Source of the DNA: Lepidodermella squamata
Taxonomy: Eukaryota; Animalia; Gastrotricha
Direction of reading: 5' to 3'
Assembly: GCA_047495785.1 (NCBI GenBank)
Contig: JBLDXI010000001.1
Coordinates: 1,054,001 to 1,118,000 of the forward strand
DNA: 64,000 nt
The translations under genes and the position numbers were made by a program. The notes beneath the pieces are model-generated. The model saw nothing but the letters and a program-made list of their open reading frames with translations. It had not been told where the DNA came from and did no database searches. Shown here piece by piece: positions 22,504 to 27,684 of this stretch (position 1 is the first letter of the stretch; the number at the start of each line of letters is the position of its first letter).

Positions 22504-23663
22504 TTTTCAGTCACATGTCAGAAACTGGTTGAAATTCAGATCAGTTGTGAGACAGACATTTTCTGCTTAGCATCTGAACAAACAAACCCATCATTCAGAC
22601 GATACCTATCATATAAAATTTGCCGAATCGTATGTACTTATGTGGCTTAGCTTTTGAAGAACAAATTTCATGTTCTCAATTTCCGAATCGATTGGTAATC
22701 CAAGGCTGTGATAAGTGAGCCCTTCATCCGAGTGGCCATGGCGGCGTTAACAGTTGCTCATCGTCTCTTCATCTTCGTTATCGCATCTTCGAAACTTCGA
22801 ATAGGCGAGGGCAGATCTTATCCACCATCTGAATAAACATATTATGGCTATGACTCAAGATGATCGTAAAATCACATTGAAATCCAGCTGGTTAATTTGC
22901 ACTGGAGACATTTTCAGCTGGACAGCATCTAACAAATATTTTTGTGATTATTATCCTGAATACAACCTCCTACTCAAAGCAAAATTACAGAGCATCACGA
23001 TGATGAATGCATTCAAGCTGTATAAAACCCATGGCATTATTTGCCTATTATTGTGGAATAAAATCGGCTCTCTCAAACTTGAATAGGGGGTTGACAAGTA
23101 TTCGAAATAGGTAAGGAGTGGCGTAACGACTGCCGGAAACATCTCGCTAGCAGTCCTGTTAGAGTGGAACACCCCAACAGCATTAATGATCCGAATATGA
23201 AATTTGAGCATTTTTCATTTAACTCGAACATGAGAATGCCAGACCTATTGGTCGGCCTCGATTATTTGAGCATTCGATTGAGGTGATCGGATAGTCAATA
23301 ATGCCCAATGGATTCTGGTACTAATCGTCATTGGCAAAAATGGTTGCGGTTTGACTTGATCACTCAAAGGCCATTGTTGAACTGTTAAAAAGTGATGAAT
23401 GGAATTTTTAATGACTGATGCAAAAAAAGATTTTCACACACGTTCTCTCTCTTTTTCAGAAAAATTCTGCATTCTATTTTCTCTGAGTGCGTCAGGCGAC
23501 TCTTTCCTTTCTGGAACATTGGATATTAAATTAAATGCCAGAAATTTCCTAAGCGAGAAATAGCACTTCAGCCAAGCTATTTCAGAGCGAAACCACGGCT
23601 TTGTTAACGCAATTTTCTGCTCTAAAATGGCTCACACATTGTTTTACATTTCAGAATAGGAAA

Positions 23664-24513
23664 ATGCCATTGAGTATTTTGTTGCTTACCTTATTCTTAG
23701 CCTTCTCTCGCAGTGAGAGCATTCCTGAGCATCAGGTTTGGGCAAAAGCCAGGTTTGTAATTCGGAATATACTCAAGAATCTTTCAGGACCCAGCAAAAG
23801 CAAAAGTTACGGACAAAGTTTTCTTTGATATCTCAATTCGAAACGAGCATGTTGGAAGAATCGTTCTTGGCCTCTTCGGTGACTTGGCTCCTAAAACGGT
23901 ACTCAATTTTCGCACAATCGCAGAGGGTTCGAAATACGACGAGAAAACTGGACTTCATCTGACCTACGTCAACTCTATCTTTCATCGAATAATCAAAGAC
24001 TTTTGTTGCCAAGGAGGTGACATTGTTTCTAAAAACGGCTATGGCTCAATCACAATTTATGGCACTACGGTAAAGACTTGAAAATGCCATTGGATAGGTC
24101 CTAATTTGATTTTTTTCCAGTATCACGACGACGATCCTGCTATACTGAATCACACGCAAGGCTATCTTCTTTCAACTGCTCATCATGGTCCAAATACCAA
24201 CGGCTGTCAATTTTCAGTTTTGGCGAAATCGACACCGTGGCTTGACGGGAAACACGTTGTTTTCGGTCGCATCTTAGAAGGCTTTGACGTCTATGATAAA
24301 ATGAACAGCCTGAAAACAGGTGCGAATGATTGGCCTATTGATCCGCCTGTAATCACTGCGAGCGGCATCCTGTCTTCGGGCCCGCTTTCGATGAATGGCA
24401 TGAGATCAACGAATGTGTTACTCGGTCTAGCTGGTAGCATGTCCTTTGGTGCTATCCTAATTTGGCTGAGATCCAGCCGTATTCATCAAGCATTTGTAGA
24501 GAAAGAACTCTGA
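23664..24513 (+). CDS. Secretory-pathway cyclophilin (PPIase) with C-terminal hydrophobic anchor, NinaA-like; exons 23664-23735, 23788-24069, 24121-24513
   Basis: Signal peptide; VTDKVFFDI..GRIVLGLFG..PKTV.NF; FHRIIKDF..QGGD; GPNTNGCQF; WLDGKHVVFG; hydrophobic VLLGLAGSMSFGAILIWL near the C-terminus. Confidence 0.9.
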
Positions 24514-25012
24514 AAATAAATTCTTTAATTCGCTAAAAGGTGAGTTTATGACTTGAATGTTGCTACTTGCACTGGCACTTATTGGGCATCTTATTAGATC
24601 AGAATATCATGATTGAATCATCTCAGGAAAGAATAAGGTTTTAGTATCAGTTTCTGCTCAATGTAACCTCCTCGTACGATGCAGTCATATTGCTCAAGAT
24701 AACTACCTCTGCCTGCCTTTTTTATATCGCCCAACATTGAATGACTTGTGCCGAATGATAAGAAATGATGCAATTTTCTTGCAGCACAATAAGGATGAGC
24801 AGACCTTTCACGCCCCAGAATGTCAACAAAACCACATCAAGAGTGTCCTATTTCTCCGCTATCTGTTTCTGATTCATGTTGAAGTAATTCATATTGCGGA
24901 TTCCAGAGGTTTCTCGGGCGGTATAAAGCCGAGAGGTGAAAGGCAGCTGACAGTGTATTTTGCTTGACGACAGTTCTATCCTTCTGGCTTTCCGACCGAA
25001 CAATTCCGAAAC

Positions 25013-25926
25013 ATGGGCAAAAAACGCTACGCCGTTTTGGAAACCTTGCACGTTTTCAAAAATCCTTTGCTTGAGACTAAGGCAAGAGATGACGGTTTTA
25101 ATATCGTATGCCTCCATGTAATTTTCTAATTTTTCAGGCGATCGACATCAAATCCCCCGATTTCCAACAATGGGCCCTCTATGGAGATAAACTCATTGAC
25201 TCCTATTTACTGGATGAGTTGCCTAGCAACGGGCCATTGCGAGACATTGTAAAGAGCAATGACATCTTGGGATCTATTGTTATAACGTTAGTTATTTCGG
25301 AAATCAAGTATACAGTATAAATTTTGTATTTATTGCATTCCGGATTTTCAGTAGGGGCATTGGTGGAATCGGCCGAGCGCAAAGGCAAATGGCTGATGGC
25401 CAGCTTGCCCAGCAAATCGTTGACCTCCAGACAAGCTACCGGCAGTTAGCTCGGCAAAATCCGCAATCTAATTGCGGAGCTTTCTATCGACCTGGTTTCC
25501 TGGAGAATCGATCTTGCAAAGTCTACGCTGTTCCCAAGACGCTAGGAGACATTTTCGAAGCTTACATATTCGCCATATGGCATGACGTTGTTGGCGATGA
25601 AGCAGCGAAGATGAAAGTAGTCAACAGCGTTCTGCATAAAGCTTTACGCCCTTTCATTGGTAAGAAATGGAAATTCTCGAGGTTATGCTATACATTCTAC
25701 TCCCCTTACAGATTATTGTCTGGCTGTTGGTATTGAGAATCCTACACTTAAGTATTGCAACGAGCTGACTGACTCTGTGAATACTGGGCGTCGATTTGTC
25801 ACGGAGTTTCTACATATTAGCAAATTTCGAGGAGTTGGACGAAATACCGATGTTGCTAACGCCGCGGCGGCTTTGATCCTTTGGACAAAAAACAAGGGAC
25901 GCTGGCCGTGGTTGATTCAGCGATAA
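25013..25926 (+). CDS. Small RNase III + dsRBD-like protein resembling the C-terminus of Dicer; exons about 25013-25081, 25138-25286, 25352-25659, 25712-25926 (5' end uncertain)
   Basis: HVFKNPLLETKA; degenerate signature FQQWALYGDKLIDSYL; VPKTLGDIFEAYIFAIWHD (Dicer RNase IIIb-type); KFRGVGRNTDVANAAAA (Dicer dsRBD-type). Splice phases are consistent. Confidence 0.72.
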
Positions 25927-25941
25927 AGCCATTAATACAAT

Positions 25942-26190
25942 TTATTGAATAACTACTGTATCATTAGTGAATAATATTCCAGAATAGCCATCTGAATTGT
26001 CTTCAATTGTAACTACTGGCTGATATTGCTCGTCGACAATAATGGCGGAGATGTCGACCGGGTGCTGTTCCGTATTGAAGCGAAGTCGAGCGTTGTTGAG
26101 GTAGCTATTGAAAGCAACGAGGCTGGTGATGATGAAGCAGCTAGCAACTGAAAACATCGCTGCCACTTGATATCGAATAGCTACTGTCAT
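25942..26190 (-). pseudogene. 82-aa ORF with N-terminal TM helix; probable truncated LicD-array member or small membrane protein
   Basis: Same strand and spacing as array genes (ATG 135 bp after the stop of copy 6). Short basic N-tail, TM and stem, but no catalytic domain. AATAAA overlaps the stop. Confidence 0.4.
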
Positions 26191-26325
26191 TTCTCGTCTA
26201 TATGAACCATGTGAAGCTCATGAAATTTCCTTCTGATATTTTATTATTGCCCTAGTTATATTGACAAAGTTGCAGCTGAATAAAAAAGATGCCCACACCA
26301 GAATTTGGCAACTAGTAATTCGCGC

Positions 26326-27684
26326 TCAGGTTTTAGTAACAAGCTCTGATGAATTCGAATAACTGAAGATGGCATCCAGGTTCGTCATTGGGTATATCGC
26401 AGCTAGCTGCGAGCAGTTCAGCTTTGGCGTCTTACCCAGTACGTACGCTTCGACGCGATGGTCCCAGGTTTGTCCTGCGGAGATTAAATAATGTAACGCA
26501 TTTAACATGCAAAGCGAAATAGAAATTGATCGTGCTGCCTTCATAAAGCTCCTAGTTTAATATGAGGTGGGGTTTAATGCCTCAGGCGCAAATCATCCCA
26601 AAGCTTCAAACCACAGAAATTAAGAAATTGCATTGGTTTCCCCATTATTGGTCGTTACATGTACTTCATTAGCAGCATTATTATAACGTAAATTACCTAC
26701 CTGAGCAAATCGTCAGATTGTAGCTGTTCCACAGCACCTTTGCCGGGTCCTTAGGAATGTTGACTTCAACACCCTCGAAAGTCGACTTGCTGAACGGATA
26801 AATCCATTTCCAAGGAAACTGAAAGTTTAAGAAAATCGATGAAACGGCGCTGCATAACATTCCTTTTTGTATCTATCACTGATCCAAATCGTAATTAAAG
26901 GAATAATTTTTATCATTTCATGGAAGACATCGCCATGCAGTAATTGTAACAATGTAAACTTACGAACATGGAAATTATCATATCTATAATCCGGGTCAGA
27001 TACGAGAACATCTTCGATATCGACATTGAAAGGGTCATAGATTTGCTCGCCACTTGAAATCGACGTTACGTTCATCAAATGAATGTCGAGGAATGGCCAG
27101 CGCCATCTGTGTTTTCGGATAGCGAATGAGTCCCTGTCAGACAACGAGAAACATTTCATCCGAGCGAATTTGCTCTCAGCAACGAATTTGAATGGCCCGA
27201 ATTCTTTCATAAACTCAGATCGAGCTGTTACTTTTCGCAGTAGCTTGGTGTAATTATGGTGGTTTCCTCCGAATTTGGCTATGGTTGGCAACAATGCCAC
27301 GTCGATGTCATCGTCCCACGGGATCATTGACTTGTTATGCCGGTACCAGCCAATCAGGCTGCCAGAATACAGAAAATGCGACAAGCCAGCATATTCAAGG
27401 GCTTTCAGGCAGGCTCGAAGATTGAAGGCGTACAATTCGTGCTGTTTCTCGTTCATAACATCTTCATACAGTTCATCCAAGTCAACCGACTGATTGGTAG
27501 AGGCTGCGACTTTCATATTCCCATGACTATCACGAATCGTCAACTGTACAAGCATCGTGGTGATATCGAGGCCATTAGAATTTTGAGAGGTTAGTTCGTC
27601 GAGAATTTGTAACAAAGCAAGCACCCCGAATAAAAAAATGAAGCATAGAAAACCATAAGGAATGAATTTATTAAGAGACGTCAT
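26326..27684 (-). CDS. LicD-family phosphotransferase, copy 6 (3 exons)
   Basis: GSLIGWYRH, IPWDDDID; exon 2 FPWKWIYPFSKSTFEGV; exon 3 WDHRVE...YPMTNL. Confidence 0.88.

Follow-up and report, generated by a model that had tools for sequence, protein, structure and literature searches.

The gastrotrich Lepidodermella squamata, in a genome of short introns, carries, at positions 25013 to 25926 of the forward strand of the window (the whole stretch of 64,000 nucleotides analysed here), a transcribed gene for a protein of 246 residues in which a single RNase IIIb-like domain is followed by a tail resembling a double-stranded RNA-binding domain (dsRBD). The RNase III proteins of animals are taken to be Dicer, Drosha and a mitoribosomal relic; stand-alone single-domain forms of RNase III are known from bacteria, fungi and plants. 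We favour, with some reserve, the reading that this gene, here called mini-Dicer, is an independent and expressed gene for a soluble RNase IIIb and dsRBD protein that was derived from Dicer and then amplified, and that its product would be a catalytically weakened nuclease or binder of dsRNA that tunes the Dicers.

A transcribed gene of four exons

The gene model comes from public sequencing runs, of which one (X1) holds cDNA-type contigs and another (X2) DNA-type contigs. X1 is recognised as cDNA-type by GT..AG joints at introns of mini-Dicer and of the neighbouring cyclophilin gene that are missing from X2, by template-switch adaptor sequence on contig ends and by zero depth across the intergenic positions 24538-24939. 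One X1 contig of 1370 nt spans all three mini-Dicer introns and gives a model of four exons, 741 nt in total, with 246 codons, in which the frames of the four segments join in consistent phases:

24955..25012 (+), 5' UTR, 58 nt with no ATG within; the adaptor abuts the genome at 24955
25013..25081 (+), exon 1, 69 nt, opening with the ATG, 23 codons; N-terminal helix of the RNase III-like domain, with the motif F-K-x-P-L-L
25082..25137 (+), intron 1, 56 nt, GC..AG, phase 0; exon end aag, then GCAAGA...TTTTTCAG
25138..25286 (+), exon 2, 149 nt; degenerate signature motif W-A-L-Y-G-D at 25171-25188, then a conserved S-N
25287..25351 (+), intron 2, 65 nt, GT..AG, phase 2
25352..25659 (+), exon 3, 308 nt; second half of the RNase IIIb-like domain
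25660..25711 (+), intron 3, 52 nt, GT..AG, phase 1, immediately after P-F-I
25712..25926 (+), exon 4, 215 nt including the stop at 25924-25926; dsRBD-like tail

A second X1 contig starts at 24955 with the template-switch adaptor immediately before it, so that the message begins 58 nt ahead of the ATG and takes in no helicase, PAZ or RNase IIIa exons. The stop codon of the upstream cyclophilin gene lies at 24511-24513, about 500 nt before mini-Dicer. A full-length Dicer unites helicase, PAZ and two RNase III domains in a single polypeptide, a layout that mini-Dicer does not have. The stand-alone frame of about 245 residues that the first-pass annotation had read from the letters, too close to cyclophilin to leave space for helicase, PAZ or RNase IIIa, is confirmed by the 246 codons and the cDNA 5' end. 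The gene was correctly placed there; two exon borders had to be corrected from the X1 joints, and the GC..AG nature of intron 1 had been missed. The joint of that intron appears in X1 as 25079>25136 with four letters ambiguous, and resolves to GC..AG. The observed message, whose 5' end is at 24955, makes no use of an upstream acceptor that had been suspected at 24973. Absence of transcripts, or splicing into distant exons of a full Dicer, had been named as what would speak against a separate gene; the message is present in X1 and uses no upstream exon.

The X1 contig depth of mini-Dicer is 160.8, compared with about 17-20 for cyclophilin, which suggests that the gene is well expressed, contig depth being a poor measure of expression. 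Downstream of the stop, the stretches 25927-26200 and 25960-26130 fold no better than shuffled sequences (z -0.41 and 0.11), and thus no 3' hairpin was found there. One X1 cDNA contig extends from the exons of mini-Dicer as far as 26473, where a CT..AC joint, 26473>26700, follows; this is the intron of a minus-strand message (window 25711-26700). Within the limits of contigs, which show neither strand nor ends, this joint indicates that the 3' ends of mini-Dicer and of a convergent LicD-like gene overlap or abut, and they could thus give rise to natural antisense RNA. Between the two lies an open frame of 82 codons on the minus strand (window 25942-26190), with a hydrophobic N-terminus, a stop 16 nt from the mini-Dicer stop and no Pfam match, which may be a small gene or just part of the 3' UTR of the convergent message.

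Other features of the neighbourhood were noted. A tandem array of at least 25 genes of the LicD family (PF04991) occupies window 14498-63884 (C1:1068498-1117884) on the minus strand, its members being 30-60% identical to the copy at 26830-27684, and the pair of cyclophilin and mini-Dicer forms a plus-strand island within it. Genome-wide there are more than 50 LicD matches, some of them next to the mini-Dicer paralogue on C54. A link between mini-Dicer and the adjacent LicD gene was considered and rejected as evidence, because the LicD genes form a huge array here. The cyclophilin gene itself (window 23600-24513, +), whose introns are confirmed by X1 joints, has a hydrophobic C-terminal tail (KD 1.75 over 19 residues) that suggests a membrane-anchored protein.

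The domain is that of RNase IIIb

Homology to RNase IIIb is established for mini-Dicer by profile comparison. When the profile of exon 3, a four-row alignment of the family, was run against all PDB chains, it matched the RNase IIIb part of Drosophila Dicer-2 (E 3.5e-6), human Dicer IIIb (2eb1, E 2.9e-5), the IIIb-dsRBD part of mouse Dicer (3c4b, E 1.1e-4) and, at E 5e-4 to 7e-4, plant DCL1 and full-length human Dicer. Bacterial RNase III followed at E 0.2-0.5, and the IIIa domain of Dicer-2 gained merely 2 bits in the same search. The N-terminal half of the domain aligns colinearly with the N-terminal halves of IIIb in the two Dicers and the Drosha of the same genome (hhalign probability 92%, E 5.6e-7). 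Against the PDB the profile of this N-terminal block, which carries the signature motif, gave nothing, and the homology of this half shows only when profiles are compared with those of the Dicers encoded here.

The Pfam RNase III models (PF00636 and PF14622) match no exon of mini-Dicer, the exons having been scanned singly, which lowers scores. Exons of the paralogues align in each case with the C-terminal part of the Pfam Ribonuclease_3 model, at E 0.0011, 0.04 and 0.019, all below threshold; in this exon-by-exon scan the best of them attains 20.1 bits where the gathering score asks for 27. A feature search of the ESM Atlas returned scores below 0.9, with RNase III families in some of the neighbouring clusters, and is taken as a lead only. 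The first-pass annotation had seen one RNase IIIb-like domain and proposed its comparison with the Dicer C-terminus; the matches agree with this, going to Dicer IIIb and not to IIIa, nor to Drosha first.

Probable descent from the 3' end of Dicer

The genome encodes two full-length Dicers, one Dicer-1-like (C17) and one on C7. The phase-1 intron that follows P-x-I at the end of the RNase III domain of mini-Dicer recurs in both of them with identical residue and phase, and also in the paralogues C19-1, C19-2 and C20. Mini-Dicer and Dicer-1 further agree in the distance between this intron and the N/S-P of dsRBD helix 1. A common intron of the same phase and an equal spacing argue for duplication of the 3' end of Dicer at the DNA level, and not for a retrocopy. 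In a genome-wide search with the family profile, Drosha (16.3 bits) ranked behind the two Dicers, whose IIIb domains scored 27.8 and 25.6 bits, and no IIIa domain was matched. Together these comparisons point to mini-Dicer as a partial DNA-level duplication of the Dicer 3' end. That the gene is a genomically encoded derivative of the Dicer C-terminus, as had been proposed from the window letters, is borne out by its own 5' end, its IIIb profile matches and the intron common to both Dicers. Within the RNase IIIa domain of the Dicer-1-like gene itself (C17:3197334-3200396), an acidic insertion and a long Arg-Gly repeat were seen.

An active site without one glutamate

Set against the consensus E-R-L-E-F-L-G-D, the signature motif of mini-Dicer reads QQWALYGD (25165-25188), with Gly and Asp kept and both Glu lost. 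The second catalytic motif, PKTLGDIFEA (25533-25562), has its Lys, Asp and Glu all present. In the numbering of Aquifex RNase III, with human Dicer residues in brackets, the site is as follows:

25174-25176 (+), position 40 (E1705), Ala in mini-Dicer
25186-25188 (+), position 44 (D1709), Asp kept
Asn (N1742), kept, within the conserved S-N
25536-25538 (+), Lys (K1806), kept
25548-25550 (+), position 107 (D1810), Asp kept
25557-25559 (+), position 110 (E1813), Glu kept

Apart from the Asn, these residues had been read in the same way from the sequence before, including the change of Glu to Ala, which can now be placed at 25174-25176 and is shared by two paralogues. In human Dicer, E1705 ligates the metal Mg-A together with D1810 and E1813 (PMC13334501). 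The corresponding E41A change leaves E. coli RNase III weakly active and a poor binder of dsRNA (PMC8708148, Table 1). The Leu that follows the Ala of position 40 corresponds to the 'ball' residue of the ball-and-socket dimer contact described for RNase III (PMC3991619). The blocks W-A-L-x-G-D and P-K-T-L-G-D-x-F-E-A recur in C19-1 and C19-2, whose exon 3 shares only 29-37% identity with that of mini-Dicer. As both blocks are common to copies so diverged, the Glu-to-Ala state is old and maintained and not a recent lesion.

An atypical dsRBD-like tail

The tail has the helix-1 motif N-P-x-L..N-E and the beta3/helix-2 motif KFRGVGRN...AAAA (25822-25872), and ends in a family-specific W-P-W (25903-25911) that Dicer does not have. 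Its resemblance to the Dicer dsRBD, already noticed in the first-pass annotation, is consistent across comparisons but weak. Exon 4, scanned singly against the dsRBD models PF00035 and PF20932, reached Dicer_dsRBD at E 0.036 with 15.1 bits against a cut-off of 26. The tail family profile found only dsRBDs in the PDB, at E 0.046-0.58, among them ADAR2 (0.046) and ILF3 (0.24 to 0.36) over nearly the whole domain, and the window tail matches the Dicer-1 dsRBD exon of the genome in 10 of 17 residues (E 5e-4). An AlphaFold model of the tail exon from a four-row alignment had a pLDDT of 49.5 and was unusable. The dsRBD homology of the tail is thus likely, and weaker than the homology of the RNase IIIb domain.

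In dsRBDs the lysines of region 3 (K-K-x-A-K) grip the RNA backbone. They are replaced in mini-Dicer, which has T-D-V-A-N in their place; paralogues have I-D-L-A-K and S-D-L-A-R. The change in mini-Dicer makes RNA binding by the tail doubtful, and we infer that the tail may resemble protein-binding more than RNA-binding dsRBDs.

A family of at least seven loci

An exon-by-exon search of the genome found paralogues on C19 and C20, and the four-row exon-3 profile added more on C19, C34 and C54, giving at least seven mini-Dicer loci, which had escaped the first-pass annotation:

C1 (the window gene), lacks only the Glu of position 40; ends just past W-P-W
C19-1, active site as in C1; ends just past W-P-W
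C19-2, active site as in C1; ends just past W-P-W
C19-3 (L023:892-1755), second motif P-Q-S-L-S-I-V-Y-K-A; hydrophobic C-terminal stretch, KD 2.3-2.5 over 19 residues
C20, position 40 Glu, position 44 Gly, second motif P-E-V-L-S-K-Y-L-K-A; stops shortly past W-P-F
C34 (L024:1927-2286), second motif P-E-E-L-G-T-I-F-E-A; hydrophobic C-terminal stretch
C54 (L025:1291-2283), signature and second motif both unrecognisable; hydrophobic C-terminal stretch

W-P-W or W-P-F stands at the tail end of every member. Intron 1 is common to C1, C20 and C54, and intron 2 to C1, C19-1, C19-2 and C20, position and phase having been checked for the C19 and C20 copies. The tandem cluster on C19 is like the window gene in W-A-L-x-G-D, P-K-T-L-G-D-x-F-E-A, W-P-W and introns 2 and 3, and its exon 1 is colinear with that of mini-Dicer. 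The window gene differs from the cluster in being an unlinked copy on C1, in an identity of 29-37% over exon 3 and in its extra GC..AG intron 1.

The active site is further degenerate in four members, and three of these four have a hydrophobic C-terminal stretch. Persistence of four paralogues without further catalytic residues indicates that the family can evidently do without catalysis. The strongly hydrophobic stretches of C19-3, C34 and C54, the three members whose active sites are the most degenerate, were read from open frames and sit behind the W-P-W/F motif, and these three may be tail-anchored, dead half-Dicers.

Constraint and distribution

X1 and X2 differ from the window at 3-5% of positions, with indels in the flanks and in an intron and none in the coding sequence of mini-Dicer. 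Eight of the 14 codon differences listed between mini-Dicer and the X1 strain change the residue, as against one of 18 in cyclophilin; being confined to the differences listed, this comparison is an indication and not an estimate of dN/dS. The protein is intact yet fast-evolving, and the high share of replacement changes fits either an arms race or relaxed constraint. It was also observed that X1 and X2, filed under two different organism labels, carry the same differences from the window (23600-27600), nearly all of them silent in cyclophilin. Such a common set of differences indicates that the reference is far, in synonymous distance, from the sampled strains or haplotype.

Relatives outside this genome were sought in three large sequence collections. 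Word-index searches, limited by their length windows, found none with either exon 3 or the 287-residue frame of C19-3 as query, and a scan of metagenome contigs with the exon-3 profile likewise returned none. An exhaustive HMMER search with exon 3 among 1.84 billion representatives gave no match at E up to 0.001, the query itself included. The missing self match means that the library does not hold this genome, and absence elsewhere is therefore weak evidence. In the searchable reviews and surveys of Dicer evolution, single-domain forms are placed in yeasts, protists and plants only, the one exception being a probable partial gene model from a tapeworm. Within the collections searched, the mini-Dicer family was thus found in no other organism and in no paper, with the weak force that such absence has.

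Proposed function and alternatives

The favoured reading of mini-Dicer as a weakened, Dicer-derived protein would run as follows. The 3' end of a Dicer gene would have been duplicated at the DNA level and then amplified into a fast-evolving family of loci. Single RNase III domains act as dimers, and mini-Dicer would pair with itself or with a paralogue, as every single-domain RNase III must; the hydrophobic 'ball' residue being kept, it could plausibly do so by way of the usual interface. Such a pair would create a cleft that binds dsRNA. Each active site has the signature Asp, the Asn, the Lys and both acidic residues (Asp, Glu) of the second motif, and lacks the Mg-A Glu. With this one ligand missing and the other residues kept, a weak or conditional dsRNA endonuclease would be expected, or else a pure binder of dsRNA or of Dicer. 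We regard a weakly active nuclease as close to an even prospect, and a non-catalytic binder or regulator as a lesser possibility that still deserves serious thought. In either form mini-Dicer would compete with or tune the full-length Dicers, functionally akin to plant RTL1, and the altered nuclease, decoy or regulatory role suggested in the first-pass annotation may be of this kind.

The strict retention of three of the four carboxylates, the catalytic Lys and the Asn in three such diverged paralogues would also suit a fully competent dsRNA endonuclease, whose homodimers would cut long dsRNA without measuring it, like RTL1 or budding-yeast Dcr1, with water, another ligand or another metal in the place of the Glu. 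The weak activity that E. coli E41A retains and the high X1 contig depth, poor measure that it is, fit such an enzyme as well. We nevertheless find it unlikely: all members in which the other residues are kept lack the Mg-A ligand, no conserved acidic residue lies nearby to stand in for it, the region-3 lysines of the tail are lost, and changes of E1705 are reported to abolish IIIb cleavage in human Dicer. Mini-Dicer could also be a transcribed relic of a partial Dicer duplication that is decaying or functionless, and the share of replacement changes among the codon differences listed, the degenerate active sites of many paralogues and the lack of a homologue found outside this genome are all consistent with that. 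Such a relic is improbable, however, given a 246-codon frame that is intact over four exons and accurately spliced, coding sequence free of indels in X1 and X2, whose flanks and intron carry them, motif blocks conserved among paralogues of about 30% identity, and W-P-W/F in all members.

A caspase-generated C-terminal fragment of C. elegans DCR-1 acts as a DNase, and the similar domain content (IIIb and dsRBD, no N-terminal parts) is the sole point in favour of an analogous function here. The worm fragment has an intact IIIb site and part of IIIa, while mini-Dicer is without one metal ligand, and nothing in the locus points to cell death, so that a DNase of this type would seem very improbable. 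The two-domain layout and the degenerate active site recall mL44, the mitochondrial ribosomal protein in which an RNase III-like domain and a dsRBD are joined without catalysis. We give hardly any credence to a protein of the mL44 type, for no mitoribosomal chain is among the matches of the exon-3 profile to all PDB chains at E up to 1, the intron and the motif P-K-x-L-G-D-x-F-E are common to mini-Dicer and Dicer, and seven fast-evolving paralogues are unlike the pattern of a ribosomal protein.

Relation to known systems and significance

The C-terminal module of animal Dicers (2eb1, 3c4b) agrees with mini-Dicer in its two domains, in their order and in the phase-1 intron between them; mini-Dicer has the Dicer-like blocks P-K-x-L-G-D-x-F-E and G-V-G-R-N..A..AAA, and its best profile matches are to this module. 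It differs from the module in standing alone, as a gene for 246 residues that has a transcription start of its own, in a new C-terminal W-P-W, and in the replacement of the Mg-A Glu by Ala and of the Leu before it by Trp, together with the loss of the dsRBD lysines. Plant RTL1, an RNase III without Dicer-specific domains that suppresses siRNA production (PMC4687873), is likewise small and coexists with full Dicers, and serves as our working model for function. RTL1 is however a plant protein whose function requires a working RNase III domain, whereas the intron of mini-Dicer indicates descent from an animal Dicer IIIb. Budding-yeast Dcr1, a 'Dicer' that lacks helicase and PAZ, has one RNase III domain and forms dimers (PMC10328071). 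Its active site is intact, it carries two dsRBDs and it derives from enzymes of the Rnt1 type; mini-Dicer has a single, atypical dsRBD and an impaired metal site.

An expressed, multi-copy family of single-domain proteins derived from Dicer would be a new small-RNA component in an animal. The family is also a natural experiment on the Mg-A glutamate, a hotspot position of DICER1 syndrome: three members lack that Glu only, and four are degenerate at more positions. Active sites graded in this way make the use of the domain in cutting, in binding or in pairing directly testable. More tentatively, and as a reading that we would not yet call probable, the family may constitute a new animal class of RNase III made from the last third of Dicer, in which soluble half-Dicers with a deliberately weakened metal site and their dead kin, some of these perhaps anchored in membranes by a hydrophobic tail, would pair with each other or with Dicer and so gate the entry of dsRNA into small-RNA pathways. 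If this is true, the gastrotrich would possess an endogenous, fast-evolving layer of regulators of RNAi or antiviral defence of a kind undescribed in animals.
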